Of a stretch of 64,000 nt of DNA, positions 1 through 44,867 are shown piece by piece. Below the pieces are notes generated by a model, which was not told the origin of the DNA, did not search any database, and worked only from the letters and a program-made list of their open reading frames with translations. Each line of letters begins with the position of its first letter. Position 1 is the first letter of the stretch. A program made the position numbers and the translations under genes. Origin of the DNA: Macrostomum lignano (Eukaryota); NCBI GenBank assembly GCA_002269645.1, contig NIVC01000939.1, forward strand, positions 62,001-126,000. The letters run 5' to 3'.

Positions 1-21
1 TGGCCTCGCACCTTACCGTAG

Positions 22-12160: not shown

Positions 12161-12448
12161 CTGATCGAGGTTCGCTATCCAAAGTTTTTTTAGCGGAACC
12201 GTAAAGAACCAATTTTTGAGCTCTTTTATTTCTAATTATCATTTTGTATGAGAATATGGCGGATTTCAAAAGCCGTAATGCAGAAATGGAATAATTCAGG
12301 TTTTTTACTGGGAATATATTTCAACAAAAATTGGACAACAATACATGTCGAATGATTTAGGCAGCAAAATGTACAGAATAGATTTTCCATATATAGCATG
12401 TACCACCGATCTGTGAATTGTTGACTCGTTAGGATACCCAACGCTCTG

Positions 12449-13039: not shown

Positions 13040-16000
13040 ATGACGGGGTCTGGTGAGATTTCACTCCGGCTTGGCTCCGTCCCTACAATCCTGCTTCTAG
13101 TGCTGGTGACGGCTACCGGAGCTCTGGCCGACGAAGGTAGAATCAGAGATTCTTTTTAAAGTTTTCTGTTTGAGGCCAAATTTCTTTTGCGGAACTTTTG
13201 CAAATATTTTATGCTTTCACGCTTCCTACAGCAATAGCTTTAACTCACTTTATGTTAGCTTTGAGACCGTTTTTGAAAGTCTGAAAATTAAACTCGAATA
13301 GCCAGAGGCTTCTTGCTTTGCAGATCCGATTCTCCCGCCTTGTAACCTTGGGAGATTCTGTCAAGGATGGAGTCTCTTCGTCACGCATGCTTGCAATCCG
13401 TGCAATGTCGACTGACTTCTGCCGTCCATTAGGCTTTGCTGTGTATTTGAATCAATAGATTTTAACCAAAAACCATCAACTGTGAAAACACTAAAATCGT
13501 CACATGTCATTCTAACTTTAACTTTAAGGCGCCTCGTGTGCGAACTTCAGCACAGACCCGTCACAGCACTCTGTCTTCATGAACAGCTCTGACGGGACGC
13601 TAAATGGTCCAGACAGCCAGGTAAACGTCACCTGCAGTGCCGGCGTTGGCGCCTATTTTGCGGATAGCAACGAGTCCAACTGGATGCAGCTGGTCTGCGC
13701 AAACGGCAGCTGGACGCAGACTTTCTTCATCTCCAACGACTCACGGCCGGAAAAGTGGCAGACAGCGGAAGTCCTTGGCGATGCTGAGCCCGTCCTTCCT
13801 AACTGCATCGGTGAGATATACTACATAAAGGTTCAAAGTGAATGCTTTGCAATCAAATTGGTCGCTAAACACTGCAGCATTCTACCCAGCATATATGTAG
13901 TACGTGGTTGCAAAAACGGAACTGTATTTTTTTTTTAATTTCGCAGCCCACGTTTGCCAAGAACCGATCATATCTGCAAACCTGACTCAAGTATCGACTT
14001 CAAAGGGTCTCTTCGAGCAGGACTTTTCCTACGGGGCCCAGCTGGTGTACCAGTGCCCAACTCGGCGCGGCTTCAGATTTCAAGGCACTGGCAACGGAAG
14101 CTCGATGAACTCGGCCAACATGACGTGCGGCTTCGGCGGTTGGTCAGTGGTCATGTCGGGTCCTTCTGGGTCAGACACCATCGACAACACCACTGTGCCA
14201 CGGTTGCTTGATTGCGAAGGTAGACAATTTTTAGAGAGATTATTTCTCTTTCCCTTTAATAATAATGTTATGAATGACTTTCACCTCAAAACAGGATCTA
14301 CACCTCAAGATAATTATTCAGTTTTCGTTTCTGGAACCGCCATCGTCAAAATATTTTTCAAGCTAAGCTTTCCACACATTTAAGAGGCGTATAGCAGTGA
14401 TTGCGAATGATGATGATTTTAAAGCTTGAATTGCATGCGCAAGACATTTATCGTCTCTTCTCTAACTGCACTCTGTCTGAAACTTCCAGGTGTCCGGTGC
14501 GTAAACTTCAGCTTTGATCCGACGCAACACCTGATTTTCGTGAGCAGCTCCGATGGGACGCTGAATGCACCTGGAAGCCAGGTGAATGTCACCTGTAGTA
14601 CTGGCGTGGGCACCTACTTTGCTGACAGCAACGAGTCCAACTGGATGCAGCTGGACTGCGACAGCGGCTGGAGGCTGACGTACTTTGTCGCCAACGACAC
14701 CCGACCGGAAAGGCGGCTGCCAACGGAGTTCCTGAATTCTGCAGCGCCCGTCCTGCCTGATTGCATGGGTACGGGATGCAAGAGCTTATTGACTTATTGG
14801 CATGTCACATAGCCGACATAGGAGGCTCAAATTACGATTTAAAATTGTGAGAATGTTTTTTGGAGAATATCCTCAGCAGCAACTGTCTCGCTAATGTGGT
14901 AGTGGTCACTCTAGCTGATCTAAATGTCGTCGCGGACCGGTGCAAAGTTTAAAATGTTGCACTTAATCGAGAAAAATGCGATAATAGCTGAAGGAATAAT
15001 CAATTATAGACTGCCACTGAGCAAAACAGAACTGATTCATTTTTCAGTGCATGTTTGCCCAGAGCCAATCGTAGCTGGGAGCCTGACTCAGGTATCCGCT
15101 GCCAACGGTCTCTTCAATGGGAGTTTCTCGTTCGGAGCCCAGCTGGTGTACCAGTGCCCCACTCTGCACGGCTTCCGGCTGTCTGGAACCGGCAGCGGCA
15201 GCTTCTTGAACACGGCCAACATGACATGCGGCCTGAGTGGCTGGTCAGTGCTCATGTCTGGTCCGACGGGTTCAAAGACTTACCAAACCTCCACAGCTCC
15301 ACGGCTGCTGGATTGCGAAGGTCAGTCGCATTCAATCGGACAAACTAGGCTTTAACCAGGCTTCATCTAAAAATTGGCCACTTGATCTCGTAGATCGAGT
15401 CCAATGGGACGTCGAGATGAAAAAGCAGCGAATTCCTACAAGTTACAGTTGAATTGCATTGCCAACAACGTACACAATTTTCAGGCGCTCCCTGTGCAAA
15501 CTTCAGCCTCAGTCTGACCCGCCGCTTAGTCATCAAACACAGCTCAGACGGGACGCTCAATGGCCCCGGCAGCCAGGTGAACGTCACCTGCAGTGCCGGC
15601 GTGGGCACCTACTTCGCGGATAGCAACGAGTCCAACTGGATGCAGCTGGACTGCGCAAACGGCAGCTGGACGCAGACCTTCTTCATCGCCAACGACTCAC
15701 GACCGGAAATGAGACTGCCAGCAAAGACGCTTGCCGTAGACTCTGCGCCCGTTCTTCCGGACTGCATGGGTAGGCCTCAGACCTGCTGCTTTGATAATGA
15801 AACTAATTTCATTAGTTTCACTACTGACTTTTGCTTTCACATAGTTCTTGCTTTTCTCTCTTCACATCTTCACACTCATTTCTGTTAACACACTGATGGC
15901 TACTTTCTTTCGAAAGAAAACCATAGCTCGCAAGTAGTCATGAAATCTGAATAGAATTTCGTAAATGGCAAAAATTGCAGCCCACGTCTGTGAGGAGCCG

Positions 16001-17893
16001 GTGGTGGATCCCAGCCTGGCTCTGCCGTCCGCCGTCAAGGGTCACTTCAACCAGCCCTTGGCTTTCGGGGCCAAGTTGGTGTACCAGTGCCCCACCATGC
16101 GCGGATTCAGGTTCAGAGGGACTGGAAATGAAACTTCAATGAACTCCGCCACCATGACGTGCGGCTTCAGTGGCTGGTCAGTGACCATGTCGGGTCCGTC
16201 AGGCTTGGAGACCTCCGAGACGTACGAAGTGCCAGAACTTCCGGAATGCGAAGGTAAGCTGAACTTATTATACTGCATTCTATCCGAATTAAAGTACCAT
16301 AATGAGCTCTTTTGAAACATTTCTAGCGCCTGAATTAAATGCCTGGCCTGTTTAGATGTAAAGTGCGCGAACTTCAGCTTTGATCCGACGCAACACCTGA
16401 TTTTCGTGAGCAGCTCCGATGGGACGCTGAATGCACCTGGAAGCCAGGTGAATGTCACCTGCAGCGCCGGTGTGGGCGCCTACTTTGCCAACAGCAGTAA
16501 GTCCAACTGGCTGCAGTTGGACTGCGACAGCGGCTGGAGACAGACGTTCTTTATTGCCAACGACACTCGACCGAAATGGCGGTCGGTGAGCCAGTTCCTG
16601 GATGACGCAGCACCAGTCTTGCCTGATTGTCTCGGTACCTAATTACCGATAAATTTTATGAGTTAGTAACAAAGATAACTTTAGTAATCTAAGTCACGAG
16701 CCACTGCCAACTTTTTTCAGCTCACCTCTGCCAGGAGCCCGCAATAGACGCGAGCCTGACTCAAGTATCTGAGATCAAAGGTGTCTTCAACCGCAACCTA
16801 TCGTTTGGAGCCAAGCTGGTGTACCAGTGCCCCGTCATGCGCGGATTCAGCTTCAAAGACACTGGTAACCTCAGTACGTTGAACACGGCCACGATGACCT
16901 GCGGCTTCACCGGTTGGTCGGTAGTCATGTCGGGTCCTTCAGGCCCGAAGCCGGAAACGAACATCACTGCGCCGCAGCTGCTGAACTGCGAAGGTCAGTA
17001 ACTCGAGCTTCAATCGAAGTAGAACGTGCTAAGTTTGTCACGCTGCATTGTGGAAAAACGCGAACTGGCCCATTCGATCCCTTAGTAACTTTCTGACAAA
17101 AAGATGCGCTAGATACAGTAAATAGTAGTTGTTTCAGAGTATCGTGAAAGTAATTCTGATTAATATGGTGCCTGGAAATCAAACAGTCACAGCTGTCTTC
17201 GCCGGACAGAATATGACGACATACACGGTCCACTTATAAGTGTCAGCGCGATTTACTCGTACTTTTTCTACATTGAGTCACGCACAGATGAATGCATAGG
17301 CGTATGAATGTAATTGAATTCTAGCAAATGGGACTGAAATAGAGGAGTTTTGAGTCATGCTTAAACTACAATATGATAAAAGTAATAATATGATGTAAAA
17401 CGCTACACTTCCAAATCTTTCAAATGTCATTGGAGGTCGCTGCCTAGTGGTTCCCATGATCAAAGTCTTTGTAAGTTTTTTTCAATATTGTTGAATCATT
17501 AATAAAAAAATTGTCATTTACCTGATGTCGCCTTCAGTGGTCACGTGCGCTCCGATCCTGCCAACTTCCGGGCAAGAGTTCACTTTGATGACGAGTGGCC
17601 TTGACCCGGACATGAACAATTCGGTCGACACCATGTTTTCCGTTCGCTGTACAAACCCGTTGCTCGCATTTTACCGGCCCAGAAAGAGGCTCTCTAATGA
17701 AGCCACTCTGGTCTGCACTGATTTTGCCACCTGGCGGGCTACCTTTGCCTCGAATCAGAATCTCAACGACGGGTTAGAAGCAAAGATCAAATGGTTAGAA
17801 GTCGCCGTCATAACTGGAGACAGTGCCGCTACCATGCCAGCATGTACCGGTAAGTGACTTTCGGTAGTTAGTTAGTTACTTAGTTAATTTGTC

Positions 17894-17968
<75 letters not shown>

Positions 17969-17969
17969 C

Positions 17970-18020
<51 letters not shown>

Positions 18021-18046
18021 CAGTTAGTTAGTTAGTTAGTTACATG

Positions 18047-18096
<50 letters not shown>

Positions 18097-18103
18097 ATTT
18101 GTC

Positions 18104-18196
<93 letters not shown>

Positions 18197-18203
18197 ATTT
18201 GTC

Positions 18204-18284
<81 letters not shown>

Positions 18285-21200
18285 AGTGTGGTTATTAATT
18301 TTCCGCGCAATAATTTATCATTCATCCCCTAAATCCTCAGAGCGCATCTGCTGGGGGACATTCGCGGCTCCGGGCCCTCAGTCCATTTTGATATCCCCTC
18401 CACCCAGTGCGGGCAGGTACGAAGTGGTTGATGGCTACACTGTCCGACATCGCTGCCTCAGCGGCTACAAGGGTCGCAGGTTCAATCTGGATATCGAAAA
18501 TACCTGCAGTATAAGGGTCCTTTCGTACAATAAGTAAGACTCTGCCCTTCTGCTGAGTTTCAGATTCAAAAATATATCCTCATGGTTAAATCCTCACGAA
18601 ATCCTAAATACGCGTACGCTCGAAACTCTTCGATCTTGGCAGACACTTAGAGGTGCGTTGGTCAAAGAACCAGGAGTTCACAGAAGATACTGAATTAAAC
18701 ATATGCATACGTGAGTTTTCTATTTCTGCCCTGCATAGACAAAAATGACTTGACATGTCGTTTTGCTTTTTATTGCCTTCAAGCGTCTAAGCTGTGGACT
18801 CAAGTTATGCGACGTAGAAAGCTTTCTAATTTGCAATTGTTTTTCAGTTTCATAAATTGTCACCAACTTCCAGACCAGTCCTACTATCGCGGCTGCTTCA
18901 CCTGGCCGGAGATCGAGGCTAGACTCAACGGCGGTGCCCTGCAGCTGGTGAACGTCACCCAGCAACGCGTGGCAAACTGCAGGTACACCTGCAGCAGGCT
19001 GAAACACATGCTGGCAGTTACGAATGCCAGCACCTGCCACTGTCTCACGTTCAACAGCACGGGATTAGAGGCGGACTTCAGCGCAAACGCCACCGAGAGA
19101 CTGCCGTTTGTGCTCCGACGGGACATCCTGGAGGCCAGGAACTGGAACTGCTTGACCCAGTGTGCCGACTCGGAGTACTGCGGGGGAGCGGCCACCGCTG
19201 ACAGCGGACCGCTGGGCTTCTTCTCTGTGTACGACTCTTTTGGTGAGGCTGAATGGATGACGATGAGATACTGAGTTAGTGTTTACTGTAGCAGTTAATC
19301 TATGAACATTTATCAGCTGCAAGCGGTAAACAAACAGTTGTAAGTGGGGTTGGTCAAGACCACAAATATATTTCCCAAGCCAAACTGGATTAAGACCGGC
19401 TGGGAATTAACAGTAGAACTACCAAGAGGGGGGAAATTCCCCCCTGACAATTTTTTTGCTGCGCCGGAACGGAGCAACACAGGCACACGAAATTCAAGAA
19501 CACGGGCTGACTTTTTGTTGCGCACCTTCTCAAACAAGAATCAAGTCGTCAGCCCTCCGGACCGTCGAGATATTCGACGATTCTGCCAGAAGGTCGGATT
19601 TTTCCCATAAGCGCCAGTGTATTCAGTACACCCCTGTGCGCCAATCAGCACTGCGCCTCAGTGCAGCCTTGCCAAGCCTCCAAATTTCAACAGCACGTCG
19701 ATCACATGTGTCTGCATCAGATCTGACTTCGTTGGTCACTGGCCTTCACCCAGGCGGAACTTCTGGACCCTCAACAGGTGGCACCAGGTGACTATGGACA
19801 CCCTGATGCGAATTTCTCAAGTTTTGCTGATCAAGCCTCGACAGTGGGCAAGCCTCAACTGCTGGACATTCTCAGCTAGTCTCCAAGCATTCTGTCATCA
19901 CCCCGACGCCGTCGGCTCCTTCAAAAAGTGGCACCGGGTGACTATGAACACCTTGATGCGATTTCTCTAGTTTCTTGCCTTGGTATCCCTACTGTTAAGC
20001 AATAAATAGCTTAAAAAGTGAATCCATCTTAGCACGACTTGTCATTCTTTAAAAAAGGCTCTGCATATTAATTGCATTGCTCGTCAATAAAAGTACATTA
20101 AAAAATAGAACTATATGCTGGATTGAATGTATTTATCATAGCAAAGTGTGAATATCCTCTAAAATTTAGTACAATCGTTGGCTTGAACTTTCCTGTTTGC
20201 TATGCGGGCCATTGTCGCTAGCTCGAGAACGGTCTCAATTCACAAAAAAACTGGAAATGCACGACCCTTATTACCTTGTAGCAGATTTATTTACTTAATG
20301 ACCAAGTAAAATGCGGAATTCCTTTTCTACCATCAGCAGTTCAAGTGAGCGTTTTTATCGACTCGCATCTTCAGATGGCTGTTACAAGATCGACGACTTT
20401 CCAACTGAACTGATTTTGAAGGAGGTCTCCATGGAGCTCTTGAGCTCAGCCGCATGCATAGCCTACTGCAGAGGCTTGCCGGGCAGTCAGTACGCAGCAG
20501 TGCGCAATGTCACGTGCACCTGCTTGAGCGACCTCATCATTGAGGCGTTGGCAGAGCCCGACTCGGCGTGCAACCTCCGGTGCCGGGCTTCGAACGACTC
20601 CTGTGGTGGCAACGGCAGCCGCTACAACATCTACTCTCTAGCCACGCAAGTGCAGAGGTACAACTCCTGCACAGAGTACTACTCCAAAGCCGACATCTAC
20701 GAGAGCAGCTTCTACCTGCTTTCTGGGACGCTCAACACAACAGTTGCTCCTGACGATGGGACCGTGGCCTTCTGTGGCATGATAGGTGTGTTGAAGTAGA
20801 GGAATCTGAAAAATCACTCGCACACATTTTGAATGATGAAATTTCTAATAACAAACACCCATACTGAAAAGCAATTGTCTACTATTAAAATGGCGGAATA
20901 GCGACGCCATTATATTGAATAAAGTTCATCCAACACTCTCGTCTCCCAGACGGCACCCCCTGCAGTCCGGGCTGGTTCGGCTACCGCGGCTCCTGCTACG
21001 CGCCCTACCTGCGCGACAGCGACAGGCTGACCTGGCCGGAGTCCGTCGAGTTCTGCGCCCGCCAGAATTCCGTCCTTTGGTCGCTGATAGACAGCGGAGA
21101 TTCGACGGTGATGGATGCCAATTTTTTCAAATGTAAGAGTTTTTCTGAGGTCTTCTTAGTGTCTAAAATTCAAAGTCGCGCCTTTTCGTTACACTTAAGT

Positions 21201-33200: not shown

Positions 33201-36200
33201 TGGTGCCAGGGACTGAACTCTGATTCTCACCCAAAATGGCATTTATGGTTGCCACCAGTGCACTGATGGCTAAAATAATTTCTCAAACACTTATTTTGCT
33301 GCAGAGATCTACTGCCACCTGAGGATCTCCAACCTGACCGCCCTGCCGAACGTCAGCCTGTCGCACTACAACAGCTCCGCTGCTCACAGGTACCTGGACA
33401 CAGCCGTGATTTCGTGCTCCAACTCAAGCACGCACGAGTTCGCGCAGGCGCCCAGCGTCCTGCAGTTCGACATTCAGTGCAATGCCGATCGGGTGTGGAC
33501 GAATGAGTCGGTGTGGAGCCAGGGCTGCAGATGTACGTTTTGTTTCTGGGCAGCTCACTCCATATCTAAGTTAAAATCAGTGACCTATTTTAATCAGTTC
33601 TTTGAACTTTGAACTCTAAAAGTTTTTTCCGTTGATTTCAGTGAGGGCCTGCCCTCCGCCGGCAATCCAGTCAGTGCCCTATCAGCTGGTCACTCCCAGC
33701 AACAACCAAACAATCAACATAAAGCAGCTGTACACAACGCCAGCTCTAAACGGCAGTGTTTTTGTGTTTAGTGAGCTGCAGCTGAGCTGCCCAGAAGGGT
33801 TTTACTTCCCCGAGAAAGCGCCTCGGTCAACAGTCTGTCTGTCGAACAAGACCTGGACATCTTTTACCGCCTGTGCAAGTGAGATTCAATTATTATCCTA
33901 TTTCCCTTACTCAATTCGCCTTGACTACCATCACTGTTGCTACACATAAAGGAAGCGGCTGCGGTGAGCCACCTGCTGTTCACAACACTAGCATCATCAG
34001 AAATGCTTCAAACATTGTCGGGGAGAAATTCCTGCTCTACGACTCGGTCTACTATGCAGCAGATGCTGGCTTCCAGTTCTCTGTGGTCAGGCGGTCCTGG
34101 CACTTCATCAGCTGTTTGTGGAATTCCAGCAACAATCGCAGCTACTGGACCGAGCTGCCGCCTCTGGAGTGTGAGTTCTGTCTCAGCTGTCATCTGAGTC
34201 ATTTCGGATTGCAATCTGTTATTGACACGAGTGTTTAAAAATATATATTCCACTCGTTACAGTGACAAACTGCTCCGCACCTGAGATTCCGCATGCAGTC
34301 TATCAAGTTCCTACCTGGAGTTCGGAGAAAAGTCTTACAAAATATTCGACAGTCAACATGAGCCTCCTCAGTCTCTCAGCCAATGCTTCAATGAAGGCGT
34401 TCTCAAAGGTCATCACCGAGTGCGCACCAGGACACAGGCATGTGGACAGCGTGAACTACATCGAGTGCAAAGCGAGTGGGGACTGGAGTCCAATGCCAAA
34501 CTGCTCTCGTGAGTAGCCTTTATCTCTAATTTTTTAGATACGAAGAATTTTCATACTTTAGCTTAAGTGCATGTTGTACCAGCATGTTACTGTCCCATTA
34601 TGCAGGCTTGAGCTGCTCGGAGCCGCCACAGATCGGCAACGCATCGGTGCTGAGCAGCGTGCTGCAGTCTCCGAACTCCAGCTGGTTTCTGTACGACTCC
34701 GTCATCTACAGAGCGAGTCCCGGCTTTCAGTTCAGTGCGGTGAACAGCACAGAGTGGTTCAGCACCTGCCTGTTACGGAGCGACAATGTCACTACCTACT
34801 GGACCGAGCCGCCACCTCTGGAGTGTAAGTTTTGTCTAAATATCAAATTACACTTCAAGCACCGTCAATATCCACGGCAAAAAGTAGCCACTATAATTCA
34901 TGTATATTCCCAAATCGTTATACATGTAGTAAGAGACTGCTCCGCACCTGAGATTCCGCATGCAGTCTATCAAGTTCCTACCTGGAGTTCGGAGAAAAGT
35001 CTTACAAAATATTCGACAGTCAACGTGAGCCTCCTCAGTCTCTCAGCCAATGCTTCAATGAAGGCGTTCTCAAAGGTCATCACCGAGTGCGCACCAGGAC
35101 ACAGGCATGTGGACAGCGTGAACTACATCGAGTGTAAAGCGAGTCTGAACTGGAGTCCGATGTCAAACTGCTCACGTGAGTAGCTTTTAACTCTAAATTA
35201 GTTAAGAAGACTTTATCATACTGTGCATTGTATACCAGCATGTTACTGTCCCATTATGCAGGCTTGAGCTGCTCGGAGCCGCCACAGATCGGCAACGCAT
35301 CGGTGCTGAGCAGCGTGCTGCAGTCTCCGAACTCCAGCTGGTTTCTGTACGACTCCGTCATCTACAGAGCGAGTCCCGGCTTTCAGTTCAGTGCGGTGAA
35401 CAGCACAGAGTGGTTCAGCACCTGCCTGTTACGGAGCGACAATGTCACTACCTACTGGACAGAGGTTTTACCTTCGACAAGTGAGCATAAATTTTGTCTA
35501 ATCTCTCTCAAACGCGGTGCTTTAAATGAAGAGAGAATAATGCATTGAATGCATTTTTCAATTTTTAACTGTACGGAATGTGATGAAGGTTTGTTCGCTG
35601 CTAATATGAATTTGCTCTAGCTATGTATTGAGACTTTTTACGAGCTTCTTTGTTTTCGGCGACTTACGGCACTTATCCAAGTGCTAGACTTGAAGTTCTC
35701 CGTTCGTTTTAGCTGAAAACCAATGTCCAAGTTTTTTATTATAGTTGTGGCGTATTAAAATAGGAACGCCTTTGACGTCATTTTCTTTTATTATCAATCA
35801 GGGATTCTCTGCACAAAGCCAGAAAACGCAACGAAGCTTGCATCAATTGAACGCTTGGAATGCATGTCTGGGACGTCGGAGCCCTGTGGTTTCAACAAAT
35901 CAAACCTAGCCTACGGCGACAGCTTAGTCTACCGCGCAGCTGAAGGCTACGAATTCCCGCCAGCCGGTGGCGTAGAGGACAATGGCGACAAAGGGCAATC
36001 GGAGTGGCACTCTGTCTGCCTGGCAACCGGGAACTGGAGCTTCGTACCGCAGCTGCGGAGTGAGATTCGTCTAATAATATTTATTTGTGTTAGCTGGTAA
36101 TATCGCATAGATTTTTGGATCACTTGAAAAGAGCAGAAGAATTTCCGCTTCCAAGTTACGTGTCGAAATGCATCGAAGGACTTCTTAAGTAAATAGCCCG

Positions 36201-39200
36201 TCGAACGTTTCACCCGGAATTTTTTCCGGAATTTTGTGATCCGGGCCCGATTTTTAATTGATTTCCGGGTGAAGGCCCGGATCAGCTTTTTTGGCCCGGA
36301 ACAGCCCCCTGTTCCGGAAAAAGATCCGGAAATATGATCCGGAAAATTTTCGGGAAAAGGAAAGCTGTTCCGGTCTGATTTTCCAGAATTTTTCACCCGG
36401 AACACTATGGAATTCTGGGTGTAGACCCGAATTTCAGTAGTGTTCCGGGTGAAAATGTTCCGGGTGAGATTTCGGGACTTGAGTCGGAATTCTCCAGTGA
36501 TCCGGACCAAATGATCCGGAAAATTCACCCGGATCAGCTCCCTTGACCCGAATTTCAGCCAAATTCTGGGCGAAGCTGATCCGGGAAAATTTCGGGACTT
36601 GAGTCGGAATTCCCCAGTGATCCGGACCAAATGATCCGGAAAATTCACCCGGATCAGCTCCCTTGACCCGAATTTCAGCCAAATTCTGGGCGAAGCTGAT
36701 CCGGGAAAATTTCGGGACTTGAGTCGGAATTCCCCAGTGATCCAGACCAAATGATCCGGAAAATTCACCCGGATCAGCTCCTTTGACCCGAATTTCAGCC
36801 AAATTCCGGGCAAAGCTGATCCGGGAAAATTTCGGGACTTGAGTCGGAATTCCCCAGTGATCCGGACCAAATGATCCGGAAAATTCACCCGGATCAGCTC
36901 CTTTGACCCGAATTTCAGCCAAATTCCGGGCAAAGCTGATCCGGGAAAATTTCGGGACTTGAGTTGGAATCAATCCGGCATCCATTATATAAGTTCCATG
37001 GGGATTTTGAGAGGAAGCCTCCGATGGAAAACCGCTGAATACAGACCCAGCAAATGGCTATCCCATCAGGCAATCCCTGGCATCCATTTGGTCAACGGCG
37101 CTAATTCCTCTTGGAAAGCGAGGGGTAATAAAGCCTCGAAATTGCAATGTGAATTGATCTGCTTTTCGGCGGCACTGTAGCGTCCGTAATGTGAGGCTGA
37201 GCCCATCCTCCGTACAGGTGACAATTGAAAAATTGTTGCGCCCTGTTTGTGTGCGAGAGGTTTGACTTCCACTGGCATGTAGTCTATCACAGCTGCTTAG
37301 TGTGTCAACGGTCTGAATGATTCTATCGTCATATTTGACGCTTAGAAGCATAAAATCAGCCAACCATATTGTTTGGCACAGCTGGGTGTCTAGACGGAGA
37401 CTGTGGCATGGTTCCAAATAGCTCTAACTGGCCCAGTATGCAAAGCAGCTTTCCTATTAAGATAGACGCTAATCCGATTTTTGTCGGTACATGCTTCCAG
37501 TGGTTTGTCTAAGGCGTTTGCAGTTGCACCAGCCGTGAGCAGATCACGTCTAGAGTAGTCTATACGGACTACTATGGTCGGTAACCATATCGTGTGGCTC
37601 AAGGCAGCTGATAAGCTGACCTGCGATGGATAATCAATCCTCGCTTCTGTTGTGGCTCAAGGCAGCTGATAAGCTGACCTGCGATGGATAATCAATCCTC
37701 GCTTCTGTTGTGGCTCAAGGCAGCTGATAAGCTGACCTGCGATGGATAATCAATCCTCGCTTCTGTTGTGGCTCAAGGCAGCTGATAAGCTGACCTGCGA
37801 TGGATAATCAATCCTTGCTTCTGTTGTGGCTCAAGGCAGCTGATAAGCTGACCTGCGATGGATAATCAATCCTCGCTTCTGTTGTGGCTCAAGGCAGCTG
37901 ATAAGCTGACCTGCGATGGATAATCAATCCTTGCTTCTGTTGTGGCTCAAGGCAGCTGATAAGCTGACCTGCGATGGATAATCAATCCTCGCTTCTGTTG
38001 TGGCTCAAGGCAGCTGATAAGCTGACCTGCGATGGATAATCAATCCTTGCTTCTGTTGTGGCTCAAGGCAGCTGATAAGCTGACCTGCGATGGATAATCA
38101 ATCCTCGCTTCTGTTGTGGCTCAAGGCAGCTGATAAGCTGACCTGCGAGGGGTAATAAAGCCTCGCTTTGATGAGACAACTTATCTGCTTTACGGCGGCA
38201 CTGTAGCGTCCGTAATGTGAGGCTGAGCCCATCCTCCGTACAGGTGACAATTGAAAAATTGTTGCGCCCTGTTTGTGTGCGAGAGGTTTGACTTCCACTG
38301 GCATGTAGTCTATCACAGCTGCTTAGTGTGTCAACGGGCTGAATGATTCTATCGTCATATTTGACGCTTAGAAGCATAAAATCAGCCAACCATATTGTTT
38401 GGCACAGCTGGGTGTCTAGACGGAGACTGTGGCATGGTTCCAAATAGCTCTAACTGGCCCAGTATGCAAAGCAGCTTTCCTATTAAGATAGACGCTAATC
38501 CGATTTTTGTCGGTGCATGCTCCATTGGTTTGTCTAAGGCGTTTGCAGTTGCACCAGCCGTGAGCAGATCACGTTGTCACGGCTGCTAACAAGAGTACCG
38601 GATCCCGGTATTCCGCCACTCTCTGGAAGGGGCCTTTGGATAGAAAGGCCCAAGCGATTGAAGCGACTGCTTTGGCGCGTGTGCCATCGCAGCAACCGCA
38701 GCCGTCACGATGCCCGTCATGCACCACAATGATGGATCAGATTCGGGCCCAAGGCGAAGCCGAGGACGAACTGTGTAAGTTTTTTATGCATATACTAGAA
38801 GACGTTAGCAGCATCGTATATATATATAAGTGTTGTCGATTCTTAAGTTTGAATCTGCTTCGCCACTCTCCTCATTTTTATGTACTTAATAGGACATCAA
38901 TTGAGCGGAGTTCGTGAAAAGCTGTCGGAGGCTCAAGCCGAAAATCGTCAGATGAAAGCTGAAGTTCTTCGATTGGAAGCTATCTCCGCCACGAGCTCGT
39001 CGGAATCCGACACGACCGTGGCGAGAAGCCAGGCAGTGCTCTTTCAATCTCGGCCAGCCGCAGAGCGGCAAAAGAAGGCGGACCAGGTGAAGGCGCGACG
39101 AATCGCCAGTGCTGCCGAAAATGAGGGGCCGACTTCTGGAAACATATATTTCCAGACGGCGAGCTACTCGAGGAGTGAAATGCGGGCGATGTCCAAGATC

Positions 39201-42200
39201 GAGTGCATAACACCCACCGCATTTATTTGCAATTAATTTCTAGCTTTTTGTTAAGGCCAAATTTGCTGGATTCGATTTCATTAGAAACGCTCTTCGAGAC
39301 ATTGGCTGTCTACATTTATGAGCCCTGAAAGGTCCTGGAAAATGAGACAAAAGTCGTTCCTTAATTTTTGCGGAGATCTTTACAATTCTTAAGCAAGTGA
39401 ATAGACAAGTCAGCTGACTTGAGTTGACTAGCTAATTAGCTGTATAGCGAGTGACCCACCTGACAGATGCAATCAGAGGTAGGCGATGGGGATCCCTGAA
39501 GAGTAGCCAATGTCGCGATAAGGTATATAAAACCGTATACGGCTTCAAAAAAAGTTGATGGTAGCATCGAAGTCCAGCTGCCCATCCGAGTGACATTCAG
39601 AAGGTCAGCATTTTTTGTTTCTGAAAGTACGTAGAAGTGCATAGAAATATACGATTTGCAGTTGTGCACAACTGAATTCAGTATTTCTGTTCGTGGACGG
39701 CTAAATCGAATTCGATTCAATTCGTAGTCGTGGAAAATGTATGGAACAATGACCCGTTCTTTATTTAATTTTCTGCTACTGTGATAAGCCCAAGATTTGG
39801 CTGCAAATCCAGTTCAATCATCCAGAATTCACCTGGACTCGTGTGCTAATCCGGTTCACTCTCCCGGAATTCGCCCGGATTTGTGTGCTGATCCGGTTCA
39901 CTCGCCCGGAATTAGCCCGGATTTGTGTGCTGATCCGGTTCACTCGCCCGGAATTCGCCCGGATTTATGTGCTGATCCGGTTTACTCGCCCGGAATTAGC
40001 CCGGATTTATGTGCTGATCCGGTTTACTCGCCCGGAATTAGCCCGGATTTGTGTGCTGATCCGGTTCACTCGCCCGGATTTGTGTGCTGATCCGGTTCAC
40101 TCGCCCGGAATTAGCCCGGATTTGTGTGCTGATCCGGTTCACTCGCCCGGAATTTAGCCCGGATTTGTGTGCTGATCCGGTTCACTCGCCCGGAATTTAG
40201 CCCGGATTTGTGTGCTGATCCGGTTCACTCGCCCGGAATTTAGCCCGGATTTGTGTGCTGATCCGGTTCACTCGCCCGGAATTTAGCCCGGATTTGTGTG
40301 CTGATCCGTTCCACTCGCCCGGATCGCACCCGGAACAGTCACCGGATTTTTTTTAGCGATCCGGGTCTATTTTCCGGAATTTTTCTTTTTGATCCGGAAA
40401 TTTCGCCCGGATTCTGTAAACTTTCGTTACAGATCCGGAATTTCCACCCGGATCAGATTGCATTACTGGAATAGGAAAAAATTCCGGGTGAACGCAAAAA
40501 ATTCCGGGCGAAATTCCGGGTGAAAAGTTCGACGGGAGCATTGGTAGTTAAATATGAAAACTGTCTGTCTCACTAAACTTGTGTACTTTACTTAAGTGTA
40601 CTTAAATGTTCTGCTACTAGAGTCGTGTAAAGATCTTTTAGGGCTGGGTGCAAAATCTAATGGGTCAATTCGATTCACAACCCGTCCACGTTCCTGTCGG
40701 TCCGGTTGTTTAACTTGCTTCGGTTTTCACTAGGACCCATTGCTAGATGTAAACAGGATGATTAACGCTTCATCCGGTTCCATTTAAGTTTTTTTTCAGA
40801 AAATGAACCGTCTCTTCCATATCTCCAGAAATGTACAGTCATGAACTTTCTCTCTCAACTGCAGGGATCTCCTGCCACCTGGGGATCTCCAACCTGACCG
40901 CCCTGCCGAACGTCAGCCTGTCGAACTACAACAGCTCCGCTGCTCACAGGTATCTGGACACAGCCGTGATTTCGTGCTCCAACTCAAGCACTCACGAGTT
41001 CGCACTGGCGCCCAGCGTCCTGCAGTTCGACATTCAGTGCAATGCCGACCGGGTGTGGACGAATGAGTCGGTGTGGAGCCAGGGCTGCAGATGTAAGTTT
41101 TGTTTCTGAGCAGCTCTCTCCAGATCTAGGTTTCAGGTTTGCTTTCCTTTCTAATTATCTATCGCGTGCATATTGATCACTCCAGTGAAGTTCTGTTCCG
41201 GCTTCAATGATAGACTGGTCGAGGTCTACACGGCTTTTCGACACAACGGTAGCGTCGCCTCCCTCCACAACCAGACAGTGAGGAGCAGCGTGGCGCCTCT
41301 CGCCAATTCCAGCGTGGCCTCATCGCCTGTATGGACCGAAGTGCAGCTAAGTTGTCCAAGCACGCACGTTCTGCCGCGCGACTCCCCGGAAGTAATTCGG
41401 TGCCAGGACAACAAGAACTGGTCCAGCTATAGTTATTGCATCCGTAAGTAACAATGGAAACGATACGAACTTCCAACTGTTTGCATGCATTCAGACGCCG
41501 CATCTCATGAACCCTTTCCAGGGCTTGCCTGTCCTTCGCCACCGAACCCTCTGGAGGCTCGCATCAGCCGTAGCTTCCTCAACGAGCCGGCGGATCCTCA
41601 ACTGCGACTGTTTGACAGCATCTTCTACAAAGCTATCGGTAGGTCCTTCTTCACCATCATCAACTCTACCTGGTGGCTGAGCACCTGCCTGCTGAATGAG
41701 TCAAGCGGTCTGCCCTACTGGACTGAGCTATTCCCCTTGGACCGTGAGTCTTGCTGATTATTCATATAAAGAAGATTAGAAGAGTAGTATAGAGCGATTT
41801 CTGGGAACACAAGACAGTATTTCGAGAATCCAGTTTGAGAAACTGAGCACTTAAAGCTTTCGACCTCGGTGTTCAAATGCGTGCTGGCTTTCTTGTACTA
41901 CTTGCTTTATGTAGAATCTTGAGAAGGAGACTTGCAAAAATAAATTGTTGCTACACGTTTCGACCTTTTAGCGGGCGAGTGCAGACCGAGCGTCCAGGAT
42001 TTATTATCCAGCATGTCGAACATTTCCCTGACCGGAAACTCGAGCCAGCTAAACCAGACCATCTCCGTGCGCTGTCCGGACGCAGCATCACAGGAGTTCC
42101 TGGACGCACCGTCCGTGACCGAGTTTCTCTCCGTGTGCCAGCCGGATGGGCAGTGGAGCAACTTCAGCCAGTGGCAACGTGGCTGCGGCGGTGAGTTCCA

Positions 42201-43229
42201 AAGATGCGACTTCAGGTTTTTGTTTGCATCGATTCCCTGACACCATCCAAGGACTTGTAGATTTCTAGTGGACACAAGCAGTATAACTCTAGTAAAGAAT
42301 TATTTAAGTAGGCTTTTTCTTTAAATTATGATTCAAGTAAATGGGATTTGGGACGAAGAACAAAACCGCAACTTTTCCGAACCAGATCGAACCTGCAATG
42401 TCATTTCCGCGTTTGAGCGGCTTTTCACCATCGCGGAGATCGATGAGAACGCCCAGATTGCTGGGTACCGCAACATCAGCCTGCCGCCGCTCATCCTGAC
42501 GCTGCCTGCCTCTGCCCCTCTGAATGGGAAGCTGCCGGTGGGGACTCACCTGGTTCTCGGCTGCCCGCCAGGGCTTCGGCTTCCGAGCAGCGCTCCGAGC
42601 TTTGCCGAGTGCAGGCAAGACAGGACCTGGAGTTCCTACCACCTGTGCCAGCGTGAGTTAAAGCCCACTTAAAGAGTGTACGAGCTATATGATGGTTTGA
42701 GTAGCAGCAGCTTAAAAGTACATGTGTGTGTTCTGAATTTTATCAGGCAAGCAATGTCCGCTGCCCCCTTTTGTGTTCGGAGCCGAGGCCGTCGACTTAC
42801 ATCTGCTGGAGCCAGCAGAGAAATATCGCCTGCACGATGTAGTCCAGTACAGAGCTGAGTACGGCCGCCTGTTCTCAGGCGTCAACAGCACGAACTCCTA
42901 CTCAAAGTGTACTGCCGGGGAGAGCGAAGAAAATGGATTCTGGACCCCTGTGCCTCCAACTTTCATCGCCTGTGAGTCTTATATTTTTCTATTTTATGCC
43001 CGCCTTTCTGTACATCAAACTGTATGTACCATTTGAAAACTGGAGCGAGTTGTCAAACAAGTTTAAAGCTTAGTTGCAGGTTTCAGAAACAGCAGCCTTT
43101 CGGCGATACTTGTGACGGACGGCTTGTGCAGAAATGGTGAGTAATTGAAACTGTAATAATTGTAATTATTGATATTCCTCTGTAGGCTTGTGTACATTTT
43201 TGCGAAAAGGAAAAATGTATTTAAAATAA
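13040..43229 (+). CDS. giant secreted mosaic protein (~4,340 aa): CCP/Sushi, WSC, C-type lectin, F5/8C-like
   Basis: At least 51 exons linked with consistent phases; the summed CDS through exon 51 (ends 42971) is 13,024 nt with no stop. Exon 1 (13040-13136) encodes signal peptide MTGSGEISLRLGSVPTILLLVLVTATGALA. Terminal exons 43080-43136 and 43186-43229 (followed by AATAAA) are tentative. Confidence 0.85.
13529..18533 (+). CDS. N-terminal block of the giant gene: alternating A/B divergent CCP-like modules
   Basis: Exons 13529-13810, 13947-14219, 14490-14768, 15048-15320, 15485-15769, 15981-16253, 16356-16634, 16721-16993, 17538-17849, 18341-18533. The first nine show a C..C..C-W..C pattern and are phase 1-1. 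Confidence 0.85.
17866..18285. repeat. (TTAG)n microsatellite filling an intron
   Basis: About 100 units, starting ~16 nt after the donor at 17850. Confidence 0.98.
18848..32020 (+). CDS. central block of the giant gene: 7 WSC, 5 CTLD, F5/8C-like and unassigned segments
   Basis: Exons 18848-19242, 20375-20785, 20950-21132, 21230-21517, 22154-22471, 22657-23098, 23192-24153, 24663-24962, 25271-25387, 25475-25657, 25863-26447, 27823-27945, 28012-28425, 28533-28802, 28978-29107, 29192-29280, 29354-29439, 29513-29672, 29753-29920, 30220-30441, 31389-31439, 31520-31666, 31889-32020. WSC motifs (YxGCF..C..C..CxC..C..CGG); CTLD motifs (CxxGW..GSCY..A..C..L..FWVGL); discoidin-like VSGYILQG..FRYQY..FGND..FEKPVLTSHFKL. 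Confidence 0.8.
24463..24527. repeat. 14-bp tandem repeat TTGGGGTCTGCCAT (about 4.5 copies) beside a SINE fragment
   Basis: Seen directly in the sequence. Confidence 0.9.
26816..27714 (+). mobile_element. defective Tc1/IS630-like DNA transposon with long inverted repeats
   Basis: 26816-26925 is the inverted copy of ~27595-27714. The internal remnant reads VADNARAH ... YSPFLNATEMAISCMKA ... AITEEKCRQW, matching the DNAxxH and PYSPxLNPIE motifs of the DDE_3 family. Confidence 0.7.
30458..30985. repeat. 11-bp minisatellite GATGTTACAG(A/G/T) in an intron
   Basis: About 48 units, starting ~16 nt after the donor at 30442. Confidence 0.97.
32137..42971 (+). CDS. C-terminal block of the giant gene: 17 CCP-like modules
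   Basis: Phase 1-1 exons 32137-32361, 32531-32791, 32936-33187, 33305-33532, 33642-33878, 33952-34170, 34263-34508, 34606-34824, 34930-35175, 35262-35480, 35802-36059, 40865-41092, 41186-41443, 41522-41743, 41972-42190, 42386-42652, 42747-42971. Confidence 0.85.
36430..36970. repeat. 120-bp subterminal tandem array (~4.5 copies)
   Basis: TTCGGGACTTGAGT recurs at 36471, 36591, 36711, 36831 and 36951. Confidence 0.95.
37592..38148. repeat. 58-bp tandem array (~9.5 copies) inside the transposon
   Basis: GGCTCAAGGCAGCTGATAAGCTGACC recurs at 37596, 37654, 37712 and onward. Confidence 0.97.
39841..40322. repeat. 42/43-bp subterminal tandem array (~11 copies)
   Basis: Unit GTGTGCTGATCCGGTTCACTCGCCCGGAATTAGCCCGGATTT at 39841, 39883, 39925 and onward. 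Confidence 0.95.
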
Positions 43230-44867
43230 AATGTACATGTACTTGTCAATCAGTTTCAACATTCATGCATCATGGCTGCATGGACCATCAGAAATCATAC
43301 ATGGTAGGTATGTTACCAGGTAAGGGGCATGGTATCAATTGAACTACGCTCGTACTTGCCGGTGCTTCATGATCTGTGTATTTTTGCTTTCAATTTAAAA
43401 TTGCGCAGGTTAAAACGTGTCTGGTGCTATTTTAACAAATGCTCAATGGCTGTACATATCTCTATGCATTCTTTGTCTCCATCGATAACCGTTTTTGTTT
43501 ACGCCTATAATTTACGATTGATATTGCACTAGAATTCAATCGGAATCACAATTAAGTTTTTATTTATGTTACCCGGTAATATCTGTCATATTACATGCGT
43601 CTGTCACATGACGACTTCGTCCTTTATTTTGAAGTGCGGTAAAAACAGGCTTTGAAATGAATTGATGAATTGAATGAATGAAATGTTTCATTGAAATTCG
43701 AGTTTTTATTGATCCTTGAAGTTTTTATCATCTTTACACTTCTGGTCTATACAAGTAATGCTTCTACCGCGTTTTATCCATATTTCGTTCGTACAGGTTT
43801 TGAGAAGTCTAGACTTGTAAATGCTAGCCGTGTTCAATTGCTCTGAATCTCTTAATTTTCCCGCGTGAGGCTTCTTTAATTTGGGGAGTGTACGCTGCAT
43901 GTTCCTACATAATGTTTTTCCAGTTGTTGTATTTGTCCCTAGCCCAATTTTTTCATGGTAAAGTCCAATTAAAAAATAAAAATATACATTTTTCGTTTTA
44001 GTTAACACAACACTGTACACACATGCATGTACATGTGTATGTATATTGCACTTTGCTAGCCTCCAATTTCTAAATTCCTTTTTAAATCATAATTTGACTA
44101 AACTTTGTGAATAAACCTTGGGCAGAACGCGAATGTTCCATTGTCAACCCTGAAGCTTAGGATGTAGATATAACTTAGTGCAAGCGACCTAAAAGTTAAA
44201 TATTCATTCCTATCTCGAAAATCTTCCTTTGCGGCGAAAATCCTCGCATCTAATAGACAAATTAGAGAGAAGTGAGACTAGCTGAGGCGAACAACCGTGC
44301 TGAATCTCAAAGCGCAGGTTCCCTGCCAAGCAGCAGGTTGACGACAACAAACACGAACAGGTGTACGTCCTCTTTGAGTGAAATCTGCATTGCATCGTAG
44401 CATGCTAGCTGTGTATATTTCTATACTGATGCGCGAATATCCTAAGCAAATGCCTAATATTAAAGAGTTAGAAATAGTCATGTAGAAGCAGTTTTGAAGC
44501 TGTCCTTGCTTCCTAATGAACGTATGTGGGTACAACATGTACAGCAGTACACATCTAATTAATAAATATTAAATGCCAATGAAGTTTTATCTTTCTTTCT
44601 TTCTAAATGTTAAAAACACAAGAAATTGTTTGCATGTACATTATTTGTACAATTCATGTACAATGTCCGTCCCGTCACATTTTACCGCATTTGTTTATAT
44701 GAACAACAGGTTAAAAACAATTTAAATCAACTAACTTTGCTCATGAAGTTCACGCATACGCGAACTTGCGGATCTCGGAGCCATAGCTGCTGAGTTGTCT
44801 TGCTGGTGTTGCAGTGGCCTAGTAAAAAATCAATATCTGTGAACCGTTCTTCACCCGCTGAATCAAT

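Follow-up and report, generated by a model that had tools for sequence, protein, structure and literature searches.

A predicted secreted mosaic of CCP, WSC and C-type lectin-like modules in Macrostomum lignano

A 50-exon gene and its surroundings

The 64,000-nucleotide stretch of Macrostomum lignano DNA analysed here (the window; contig NIVC01000939.1, positions 62,001 to 126,000 of the forward strand) most likely holds, at 13040–43036 on its + strand, one animal gene of 50 exons, whose product is predicted from the sequence to comprise about 4,300 residues. A splice-aware model reads the region as a single open chain of 50 exons encoding 4,311 amino acids, slightly fewer than the ~4,340 of the original prediction. 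GT-AG borders are present at all 49 introns, 42 of the 48 internal exons are of phase 1-1, and the 12.9 kb of coding sequence contains neither an in-frame stop nor a frameshift. The earlier view that the gene escapes a list of open reading frames because its exons are short agrees with this structure of short GT-AG, mostly phase-1 exons in eukaryotic DNA. The model is doubtful at exon 11, at the junction of exons 17 and 18, in exons 26-29 and 31-32, and at the terminal exon.

Exon 1 (13040..13136, +), located by hydrophobicity and a donor scan, carries the start codon and a signal-peptide-like leader (MTGSGEISLRLGSVPTILLLVLVTATGALADE) and ends in a phase-1 donor; the ATG that opens the chain is the start originally placed at 13040. 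Between 12000 and 44000 on the + strand, no other hydrophobic leader that begins with an ATG and has a usable donor was found, which favours one gene over several. At the other end, a pattern search places an AATAAA polyadenylation-type signal at 43225..43230 (+), after the last CCP exon and close to the originally proposed end at 43229. The coding sequence may finish in two ways, by read-through to a stop at 43034-43036 or by splicing from a donor at 42971 to a mini-exon at 43080-43144.

The window also contains the 3' end of an upstream tandem paralogue (1..2650, +; tblastn and blastn), in which six CCP exons are collinear with exons 45-50; its ending is of the same kind, with an AATAAA at 2647. 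Amino-acid identity between the two is 35-71 %, and their DNA can be aligned in exons only (68-83 %), with dN 0.27, dS 0.97 and dN/dS 0.28. The confinement of similarity to exons, together with this ratio, argues that the exons are real coding sequence, and the strong conservation of CTLD2 in the M. lignano fragment P0001 points the same way. Precisely where the last CCP exon ends, the DNA similarity breaks off, which argues against a conserved exon further downstream.

Intron 44 owes its length of 4.8 kb to the insertion of a repetitive, probably mobile element (36228..39524, blastn), of which a second copy, 76-95 % identical, is found at 53949-56092. Part of the intronic copy is duplicated within it, and it also contains a 58-bp minisatellite. 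A neighbouring cyclin gene has its closest database match at only 44 % identity.

Domain composition of the predicted protein

Two arms of CCP modules flank the core of the protein. About 27 such modules had been predicted, and 26 are supported, nine N-terminal and 17 C-terminal. Individually, nine of the 27 match Pfam Sushi, while the profile built from all of them matches complement receptor 1 (CR1; E 8e-79), factor H (1e-35) and CR2. With its own subtype left out of the profile, each module scores above shuffles except the half-module of exon 11, those of exons 8 and 39 being marginal (exon 8 reaches 8.1 bits against 8.4 for its best shuffle) and that of exon 10 lying only narrowly above all 100 shuffles. 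The N-terminal arm (exons 2-10, 13529..17849, +), its splice sites read directly, consists of four A-B pairs of four-cysteine modules of 91-95 aa plus one divergent CCP; identity is 64-78 % among A modules and 57-67 % among B modules, and the latter match Pfam Sushi. The C-terminal arm (exons 34-50, 32137..43036, +; Pfam Sushi E 1e-10 to 1e-12) is made of super-repeats of four subtypes, two-cysteine variants among them, and includes recent internal duplicates of 93-97 % identity. Between internal duplicates of the gene dN/dS is 0.3-0.5. The proposed 27th module, exon 11 (18341..18508, +), is a doubtful three-cysteine half-CCP with a weak donor; the CCP profile gives it 0.2 bits, within the shuffle range, and, being a phase 1-1 exon, it could be skipped without breaking the frame.

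The seven WSC domains that had been announced are all present, each with the eight invariant cysteines, and six match Pfam. The WSC profile retrieves the KREMEN1 WSC domain from the PDB (E 2e-5). WSC1 (exon 12) and WSC2, which shares exon 13 with the two-cysteine linker that comes after it, lie at 18874..20785 (+), with an acceptor located at 20375. WSC2 scores 34.5 bits in Pfam; WSC1 has no Pfam match but keeps its eight cysteines and, with the internal WSC profile, reaches 15.5 bits, more than any of 200 shuffles. WSC3 (exon 16, 22154..22471, +) reaches 21.3 bits in Pfam (E 3e-4) and 24.1 bits with the internal profile, and WSC4 (exon 19) reaches 32.6 bits in Pfam and is followed by another two-cysteine linker (exon 20) whose splice sites were found (24663..25387, +). 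WSC5 forms the second half of exon 22, after CTLD3, within 25475..26447 (+), and WSC6 is exon 25, within 27823..28802 (+; Pfam 22.2 bits, internal profile 35.8 bits); the piece containing both scores 43.7 bits against Pfam WSC. WSC7 (29753..32020, +) has its N half in exon 30 and its C half in exon 33; once joined, the two exons give a full-length Pfam WSC of 29.3 bits, over the gathering score. Between the halves lie the doubtful exons 31 (30220-30441) and 32 (31520-31666) and an 11-bp minisatellite.

Of five C-type lectin-like domains (CTLDs) originally counted, four are supported, at 21-38 bits against canonical CTLDs. CTLD1 (exons 14-15, 20950..21517, +) scores 22.9 bits against these, with shuffles at 5.5 or less, and has a weak UL45/CTLD match in Pfam. 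CTLD2 (the rest of exon 18, 23600..24153, +) gives 31.7 bits with Pfam Lectin_C and 37.9 bits against canonical CTLDs; its N-terminal half is nearly identical in an M. lignano fragment, P0001. CTLD3 (exon 21 continuing into the first half of exon 22, within 25475..26447, +) gives 27.1 bits with Lectin_C, and CTLD4 (exon 24, after a linker in exon 23, within 27823..28802, +) gives 23.0 and 18 bits with Lectin_C and 27.5 bits against canonical CTLDs. The fifth, read in exons 31-32, has no Pfam match and reaches 6.6 bits when compared with canonical CTLDs and 0.1 bits with the internal profile. A motif check found the EPN/QPD and WND calcium/sugar motifs in none of the CTLDs.

No fold can be assigned to about 425 residues, which lie in two regions termed U1 and U2. 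U1 (~270 aa, 22657..23600, +) takes up exon 17 and the beginning of exon 18, with an uncertain junction between the two. It matches no Pfam family and shows homology to P0002 and P0001, two M. lignano fragments; its AlphaFold model, at pLDDT 30, is too poor to be of use. U2 (~155 aa), placed with a linker in exons 26-29 by the splice model (28978..29672, +), has exons of mixed phases and finds nothing at E<=10 in Pfam or in PDB sequence searches. This is probably where an F5/8C domain had been read, an assignment that finds no support: our own discoidin profile scores at most 5.3 bits on single frames and -1.2 bits on the spliced model.

The sequence supports a product that is secreted, heavily glycosylated and without a membrane anchor, as first proposed. 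The exon 1 leader, with a Kyte-Doolittle value of 2.0, is the most hydrophobic stretch of the protein, and nothing beyond it approaches transmembrane hydrophobicity. N-x-S/T sequons number 129; shuffles give 45.8±5.7 (z 14.7), and reading the same exons in the two wrong frames gives 10 and 6.

Relatives and related architectures

The protein appears from its sequence to be a new arrangement of common extracellular modules. When the longest exon was searched exhaustively with phmmer against 1.84 billion representatives, the specific relatives returned were two short M. lignano fragments only; the other hits were generic multi-CTLD proteins of 25-38 % identity, a domain-level similarity. The fragments, A0A1I8JHT8 (P0001; 44 % identity over 185 aa) and A0A1I8I2V5 (P0002; 51 % over 68 aa), are uncharacterised, 197 and 127 aa long, and between them span U1 and the N-terminal half of CTLD2, the motif FCNYFNATLA being part of what they cover. 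The 1,186-aa core gave no match in word-indexed searches, and of the 80 closest CTLD proteins not one combines CCP arrays with several WSC domains. The architecture thus deserves to be called unfamiliar, since neither the search of 1.8 billion proteins nor these 80 yielded the same layout.

Several families share parts of it. Complement receptor 1, factor H, SVEP1/polydom and CSMD likewise carry tandem CCP/Sushi modules, one per phase-1 exon, in extended arms. The modules here are longer (73-104 aa against the usual ~60), seven of them lack the second and fourth cysteines, and no Pfam match to vWA, EGF, pentraxin or CUB domains was obtained, unlike in the long CCP-array proteins. The likeness to CR1 and factor H does not imply a complement-regulatory function. 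The eight-cysteine WSC fold is common to KREMEN1/2, polycystin-1, WSCD1/2 and the fungal WSC lectins and sensors, but KREMEN1/2, polycystin-1 and WSCD1/2 have one WSC domain each, against seven here, and the Kringle, CUB, PKD, REJ and sulfotransferase domains or transmembrane segment of animal WSC proteins were not found by Pfam or hydrophobicity.

Lecticans (the G3 region of aggrecan and versican) and selectins combine CTLD and CCP in extracellular proteins. Lecticans are secreted matrix cross-linkers and offer the closest functional analogy, although their single CTLD and single CCP stand beside EGF domains, link modules and GAG regions that are absent here, as are the membrane anchorage and the sugar-binding EPN CTLD of selectins. 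Mannose-receptor-type proteins share tandem CTLDs, and the predicted CTLD+WSC proteins P0020, P0022, P0049 and P0054 have one WSC each; none of those compared shows multiple WSC domains or WSC/CTLD alternation, and a single faint CCP match was seen among them (P0069).

Within M. lignano, prostate or seminal-fluid candidates with WSC domains have been reported (PMC4490696, PMC6953679). Two of these, RNA815_80.4 and Mlig-pro46, are secreted proteins from the genus of the only detectable relatives but, compared by description only, are small, carrying about two WSC domains or resembling WSCD2 (PMC4490696, PMC6953679). Large gland proteins including Mlig-ap1, which has one CTLD, are likewise very large, secreted, cysteine-rich and glycosylated; the vWD-C8-TIL, EGF, TSP-1, LDL and lysine/arginine-rich repeats of the Mlig-ap1 group are absent here (PMC6410801).

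Alternative readings and a possible role

Nearly all exons being of phase 1-1, any combination of them stays in frame and an open chain would be expected even if they came from more than one transcript, so that the chain is weak evidence against two or more wrongly joined genes or alternative units, for instance N-terminal CCP, WSC/CTLD and C-terminal CCP genes. Long, repeat-bearing introns do separate the blocks (17850-18873, 26448-27822, 30442-31519 and 36060-40864). Such a fusion is nevertheless unlikely: the span holds one signal-peptide exon, no internal exon of the model ends in a stop codon, the 4.8-kb intron is a repeat insertion within a four-module CCP super-repeat, and the paralogue has the same six end modules, each copy showing a polyA signal only after them. 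Decay of an unexpressed duplicate, the least probable of the alternatives, might be suspected from membership in a tandem family and from degenerate-looking modules (the half-CCP of exon 11, the two-cysteine CCPs, the split WSC7), but the intact coding sequence and introns, the dN/dS values against the paralogue and between internal duplicates, and the preserved sequon and cysteine patterns all speak against it. Type I membrane proteins are common among long proteins with CCP or CTLD modules, and the last CCP exon retains a strong donor (GTGAGT at 42972; GTAAGT in the paralogue) that may serve a further exon. A selectin-, polycystin/REJ- or CSMD-like receptor with a missed transmembrane exon is still very improbable, given a model devoid of hydrophobic segments past the leader, the end of paralogue similarity with the last CCP exon, stops and AATAAA within ~200 nt in both copies, and a Pfam search that found no PKD, REJ, GPS, EGF or CUB domain.

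A soluble innate-immune recognition protein or complement-type regulator, with opsonin-like or thioester proteins as ligands of its CCPs and a core that would recognise microbial polysaccharides such as beta-glucan or chitin, appears about as doubtful as the fusion of several genes. Complement regulators are the best matches of the CCP profile, WSC and CTLD together make a plausible polysaccharide-recognition set, and tandem duplication with fast divergence is compatible with immune genes. Bivalve combinations of CTLD with WSC/Sushi have been proposed as immune molecules, from prediction only (PMC10140915). However, the CCP likeness is at fold-family level and silent on complement function, sugar-binding motifs are missing from the CTLDs, the Pfam search found no protease, thioester or other effector domain, and nothing links the gene to infection.

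The reading we prefer, with a probability of roughly 0.55, is that the gene belongs to a tandemly duplicated, lineage-specific family and that its product would be a multivalent secreted scaffold or cross-linker. By comparison with the CCP arrays of complement regulators and SVEP1, the protein may form an extended string of beads, a 9-CCP and a 17-CCP arm on either side of a ~2,000-residue core in which seven WSC domains would alternate with four CTLDs, short two-cysteine linkers, U1 and U2. The original idea of a multivalent glycan binder is weakened by the missing EPN/QPD and WND motifs, which leave the WSC domains as the one argument for carbohydrate binding. We know of no established ligands for animal WSC domains. 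These domains might contact polysaccharides or glycoproteins, the non-canonical CTLDs proteins or other non-sugar partners, and the CCP arms could act as spacers and protein-binding surfaces. Such a molecule may cross-link a secreted matrix or secretion of the animal, candidate sites being the prostate or seminal fluid, the shell or cement glands, mucus and the adhesive glands.

Structure and limits of the gene

The window is of eukaryotic origin; its + strand contains, at 13-43 kb, stop-free segments that encode repeated cysteine-rich modules, and canonical phase 1 splice sites can be read directly at the module borders (e.g., ...TGCATCG/gtgaga and tttcgcag/CCCACG). A mechanical ORF list gives just short ORFs across this region, as anticipated by the original prediction, which had described the gene as invisible in the ORF track on account of its short exons. 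The gene was modelled by dynamic programming with phase tracking; the codon log-odds came from training on the obvious modules, and the weights for donors and acceptors were generic. The splice model was then curated with the help of homology of the modules, inspection of splice sites and a single external homologue. A micro-intron of the first automatic model (13053-13100) was removed, and the exon at 19618-19787 was taken out as spurious because its coding score is negative and an acceptor at 20375 completes the second WSC domain. Since the Macrostomum lignano fragment A0A1I8I2V5 matches the window upstream of exon 17 as first modelled (22837-23047), the start of this exon was moved upstream to 22657. 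The final model comprises 50 exons from 13040 to 43036, with 12,936 coding nt for a protein of 4,311 aa; GT-AG borders delimit every one of its 49 introns (median length 164 nt), and phase 1-1 applies to 42 of its 48 internal exons. Its start is the one originally predicted (13040), and the predicted end at 43229 agrees with an AATAAA at 43225. The C-terminus is uncertain between two endings, a 20-aa read-through tail that ends at 43036 and a further exon of 65 nt (43080-43144) joined to the donor at 42971.

Phase 1-1 exons leave the frame open however they are combined, so that frame continuity alone is weak evidence for one gene, and the span might actually consist of more than one gene wrongly joined. 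This is improbable, since the + strand has, from 12000 to 44000, a single first exon that resembles a signal peptide and possesses a usable donor, no stop interrupts the modelled chain ahead of the last exon, and the 3' end structure is common to a neighbouring paralogue. Moreover, the longest intron (intron 44, 4.8 kb) lies within a four-module CCP super-repeat and owes its length to a repeat element that occurs again at 53.9-56.1 kb. From these points we infer a single gene across all 50 exons. The element itself is ~2-3 kb long. Its two copies, at 36228-39524 and 53949-56092, share 76-95 % identity and their open frames have no Pfam match; the intronic copy also contains an internal duplication and a 58-bp minisatellite (37593-38168).

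The paralogue occupies the beginning of the window (1-2650, +), where only its 3' end is seen. Its last six CCP exons, in the first 2.5 kb, are collinear with exons 45-50 of the gene, with amino-acid identities of 35-71 %, and end with a stop after '...FLACK'; an AATAAA is located at 2647. At the DNA level the two can be aligned in exons only (68-83 %), the introns being unalignable. The comparison gives a dN of 0.27 and a dS of 0.97 (dN/dS 0.28, Nei-Gojobori), and the pN/pS of internal duplicates is 0.3-0.5. These patterns point to real coding sequence under purifying selection and to a gene that is part of a tandem family. The gene is real and correctly delimited, and it represents an uncommon arrangement of common modules.

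The GC content of the window is ~47 %, intronic minisatellites are many, and minisatellites in general are strikingly frequent throughout; the tandem arrays include a (TAGT)104 array in intron 10 (17865-18283). Between the two paralogues, a 14/43-bp unit occurs ~60 times at 11306-12161, and a common repeated sequence is present at 4167-4427 (-) and 7406-7729 (-), both translations starting with GGRPFSFNRWNGSE; these intergenic stretches probably belong to another dispersed repeat family. A reverse-transcriptase fragment at 8250-8510 (RVT_1, E 0.0075) is followed by a 254-aa open frame (8549-9310) that has no Pfam match. Both are bracketed by direct repeats of ~250 bp (8028-8276 and 10084-10332) with identical 83-aa translations, and the whole segment (8028-10332) resembles the remnant of a retroelement. 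The gene is followed immediately by an AT-rich block (44000-48000; GC 32-33 % versus ~47 % elsewhere) with no convincing open frames. A cyclin-like gene follows at 49698-51390 (+), comprising Cyclin_N and Cyclin_C, whose best database matches (cyclin-B1, cyclin-P-like) show 44 % identity. It is preceded by 34 copies of a 20-bp unit (49021-49694), carries a 42-bp minisatellite in an intron (50428-50973) and is trailed by a 68-copy array of a 20-bp unit (51438-52788). An ATG-initiated, cysteine-rich frame of 257 aa at 57108-57881 (+) is without a Pfam family and matches no entry of the gene-call collection exactly. Finally, an EF-hand gene of the calmodulin/centrin type (58656-61772, -; EF-hand_1, E 2e-25) has its exons parted by a 2.25-kb array of 172 copies of a 13-bp unit (59036-61288). 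Rfam detected no RNA family within the 64,000-nt window.

The CCP arms and the WSC/CTLD core

The CCP module (also Sushi or SCR; Pfam PF00084) spans ~60 aa and contains four cysteines, bonded C1-C3 and C2-C4, with an invariant Trp between C3 and C4. In the N-terminal arm, exons 2-9 encode four pairs of long modules, A (93-95 aa) and B (91 aa), with identities of 64-78 % among A modules and 57-67 % among B modules, while exon 10 encodes a divergent CCP module. The C-terminal arm (exons 34-50) is made of 17 modules that fall into four recurring subtypes; some of the modules are recent internal duplicates with 93-97 % identity. An alignment of all 27 candidates yields the consensus C..P...C..G..F...C.....W...C, in which C1 is invariant and the Trp is present in at least 90 %. 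Pfam Sushi is matched individually by 9 of the 27 (E<=0.01), and a profile of all 27 retrieves, among solved structures, complement receptor 1 (CR1, 8e-79), CR2 (3e-44) and factor H (1e-35). When each subtype was left out in turn, all modules except that of exon 11, a half-module candidate at 18341..18508, scored higher than the best of 100 shuffles or close to it, those of exons 8 and 39 marginally. On the basis of the consensus, the Pfam and profile matches and the leave-one-subtype-out test, 26 CCP modules are counted as supported; of the ~27 first proposed, the half-module of exon 11 is lost. Both the cysteine/Trp pattern and the profile similarity assign the predicted modules to the CCP fold family. 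Seven of them (exons 36, 39, 41, 43, 44, 47 and 50) have no C2 and/or C4 and would be devoid of the C2-C4 disulfide.

WSC domains (Pfam PF01822) are characterized by eight conserved cysteines within ~80-100 aa. All eight are invariant in the alignment of the seven copies of the core, the number originally predicted. Against a Pfam gathering threshold of 27.8 bits, WSC2 and WSC4 reach 34.5 and 32.6 bits, WSC5 reaches 43.7 bits for a piece that also contains WSC6, and WSC7 reaches 29.3 bits when its two halves are joined. The weak copies are rescued by an internal profile with scores of 15.5-35.8 bits that exceed those of shuffles: WSC1, which has no Pfam match, scores 15.5 bits (above all 200 shuffles), WSC3 24.1 bits (Pfam 21.3) and WSC6 35.8 bits (Pfam 22.2). 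The best match of the WSC profile among solved structures is the WSC domain of KREMEN1 (2e-5). By analogy with fungal WSC lectins, these domains would be the likeliest carbohydrate-binding elements of the protein.

WSC7 (29753-32020, +) is split between exon 30 (N half) and exon 33 (C half), 2 kb apart, and a full-length Pfam WSC is obtained only if the two exons are joined directly. A 48-copy repeat of 11 bp (30456-30984) lies between the halves, as do exons 31-32, which contain a CTLD-like C-x3-W...C motif. These two exons could be spurious, could be cassette exons or could encode a very divergent domain inserted into WSC7.

The signature of C-type lectin-like domains (CTLDs, Pfam PF00059) combines an N-terminal C-x-x-G-W...C-Y motif with paired cysteines. 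Four of the five CTLDs initially proposed are supported by Lectin_C matches in Pfam (31.7, 27.1 and 23.0 bits) and by best-domain scores of 21-38 bits against canonical CTLDs, compared to at most 10 for shuffles. The fifth candidate, exons 31-32, has no Pfam match, scores 6.6 bits against canonical CTLDs and 0.1 bits against the internal CTLD profile, and is left without statistical support. Calcium-dependent sugar binding by C-type lectins involves, in the long-loop region, an EPN or QPD tripeptide together with a WND motif. The entire 4,311-aa protein contains no EPN and no WND, and the two QPD tripeptides reside in WSC3 and in a CCP module, none in a CTLD. This motif test argues against the CTLDs as calcium-dependent sugar-binding lectins; they more probably bind non-sugar ligands. 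The carbohydrate-binding type of core that had been suggested would consequently be represented by its WSC domains and not by its four CTLDs.

Unassigned regions and relatives

The original prediction had also included an F5/8 type C (discoidin) domain, which none of three tests supported. It has no Pfam match at E<=10, neither in the spliced exons 26-29 nor in a 453-aa piece containing them, phmmer detected no PDB sequence match, and a discoidin profile applied with all filters off to the model and to every open frame of the window nowhere exceeded 5.3 bits. This profile was composed of four sequences, two discoidin domains from search matches and the factor VIII C1 and C2 domains. Its two top-ranked frames, with scores at chance level, fall in U2, a region of ~155 aa encoded by exons 26-29 (within 28978..29672); U2, with motifs such as FTVTSAS and IVSGYILQ, is most likely the place where the domain was read. 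The gene should be described without the F5/8C domain, the fifth CTLD and the 27th CCP.

Another region, U1, covers ~270 aa (exon 17 and the start of exon 18; 22657..23600). Neither U1 nor U2 has a Pfam or a PDB sequence match, and internal comparison revealed no similarity between them or of either to the rest of the protein. An AlphaFold model of exon 18, based on an alignment of three rows, had a pLDDT of 30 and was unusable. Four short two-cysteine linkers ('SC...C') follow WSC2, 4, 5 and 6; a fibrinogen-related A subdomain was considered for them and dropped, with no Fibrinogen_C in Pfam at E<=10.

Word-indexed searches of 5.8 billion protein clusters with the CTLD2 exon and with a 1,186-aa core gave no match, nor did exact-product look-ups with two ORFs of the window and A0A1I8JHT8. 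An exhaustive phmmer search with exon 18 against 1.84 billion representatives produced 82 matches, of which 80 are generic multi-CTLD proteins (23-38 % identity). The only specific relatives are A0A1I8JHT8 (197 aa, 44 % identity, E 8e-32) and A0A1I8I2V5 (127 aa, 51 % identity, E 7e-15), both UniRef entries of M. lignano, a flatworm of the Macrostomorpha. The two fragments suggest a flatworm related to Macrostomum as the source, and the GC content and abundant intronic minisatellites of the window fit genomes of this genus; with a cyclin gene no closer than 44 % to its best matches, however, the locus at least would be missing from public protein sets. Among the 80 CTLD matches, four also have a WSC domain, one each; neither CCP arrays nor multiple WSC domains occur in any of the 80. 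CTLDs combined with WSC or Sushi have been described as predicted bivalve-specific architectures (PMC10140915). No characterized protein with the CCP-WSC-CTLD layout was found in the literature, and the architecture is as unfamiliar as first stated.

The gene product lacks the defining features of several known families that combine some of these modules or act in flatworm adhesion. Selectins are organized as CTLD(EPN)-EGF-CCPn-transmembrane-tail, whereas EGF, EPN and a transmembrane segment are all missing here. Polycystin-1 and the sea-urchin REJ family add PKD repeats, a REJ module, a GPS site and 11 transmembrane segments to WSC and CTLD; in contrast, Pfam identifies only Sushi, WSC and Lectin_C in the gene product and its sole hydrophobic segment is the leader. 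With KREMEN (Kringle-WSC-CUB-transmembrane) it shares the WSC fold but no Kringle, CUB or transmembrane segment. Lecticans have G1 Ig-link modules, a GAG attachment region and a G3 EGF-CTLD-CCP unit, whereas no Ig, Xlink or EGF is detected by Pfam in the product. The flatworm adhesive proteins Mlig-ap1/ap2 possess a vWD-C8-TIL core, EGF or TSP-1 arrays and Lys/Arg-rich repeats (PMC6410801); none of vWD-C8-TIL, EGF and TSP-1 is found by Pfam in the gene product, which has a K+R content of 7.3 % and no basic repeat region.

Secretion and possible roles

Exon 1 encodes MTGSGEISLRLGSVPTILLLVLVTATGALADE, and this leader is the sole strongly hydrophobic stretch of the protein (Kyte-Doolittle 2.0; next best 1.2). 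The signal peptide and the lack of a transmembrane segment are both borne out by the hydrophobicity scan of the modelled protein. Since DNA similarity to the paralogue extends precisely to the 3' border of the last CCP exon and no further, no conserved exon is indicated downstream. The density of N-x-S/T sequons also holds: there are 129, compared to 45.8±5.7 in composition-preserving shuffles (z 14.7), and 10 and 6 when these exons are read in the two wrong frames. The predicted product, ~4,300 aa long, is a heavily glycosylated, secreted modular protein whose WSC/CTLD core is flanked by two CCP arms.

Within a secretion or an extracellular matrix, such a protein would probably act as a scaffold or cross-linker of extended, multivalent form. 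Candidate settings are humoral immunity and the secretions of prostate, shell gland, mucus and adhesive glands. In a more specific proposal, the gene and its tandem paralogue would be the first members of a family of giant secreted proteins restricted to flatworms. Seven WSC domains, an unusually large array for an animal, would alternate with non-canonical CTLDs in a new kind of core, carried on long CCP arms, that cross-links a polysaccharide or glycoprotein in a specialised secretion (seminal fluid, eggshell/cement, mucus or temporary adhesive), and U1 and U2 (~425 aa) would be new domains. We hold this proposal tentatively, with a probability of roughly one in four.

In invertebrate genomes, CCP, CTLD and similar modules are commonly shuffled into new giant proteins in a lineage-specific way, and the finding mainly adds an uncharacterized family, not a new principle. 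To our knowledge, the seven WSC domains would make this the animal protein richest in them, if it is expressed as modelled. In that case it would offer a handle on the ligands of animal WSC domains, which for KREMEN, polycystin-1 and WSCD1/2 are not yet clear. Reversible adhesion in macrostomid flatworms is mediated by giant gland proteins, and their prostate secretions have been linked to WSC proteins. Prostate and seminal-fluid candidates with WSC domains have been reported in M. lignano (PMC4490696, PMC6953679). These ties would make a giant WSC/CTLD/CCP protein a concrete candidate in both systems.
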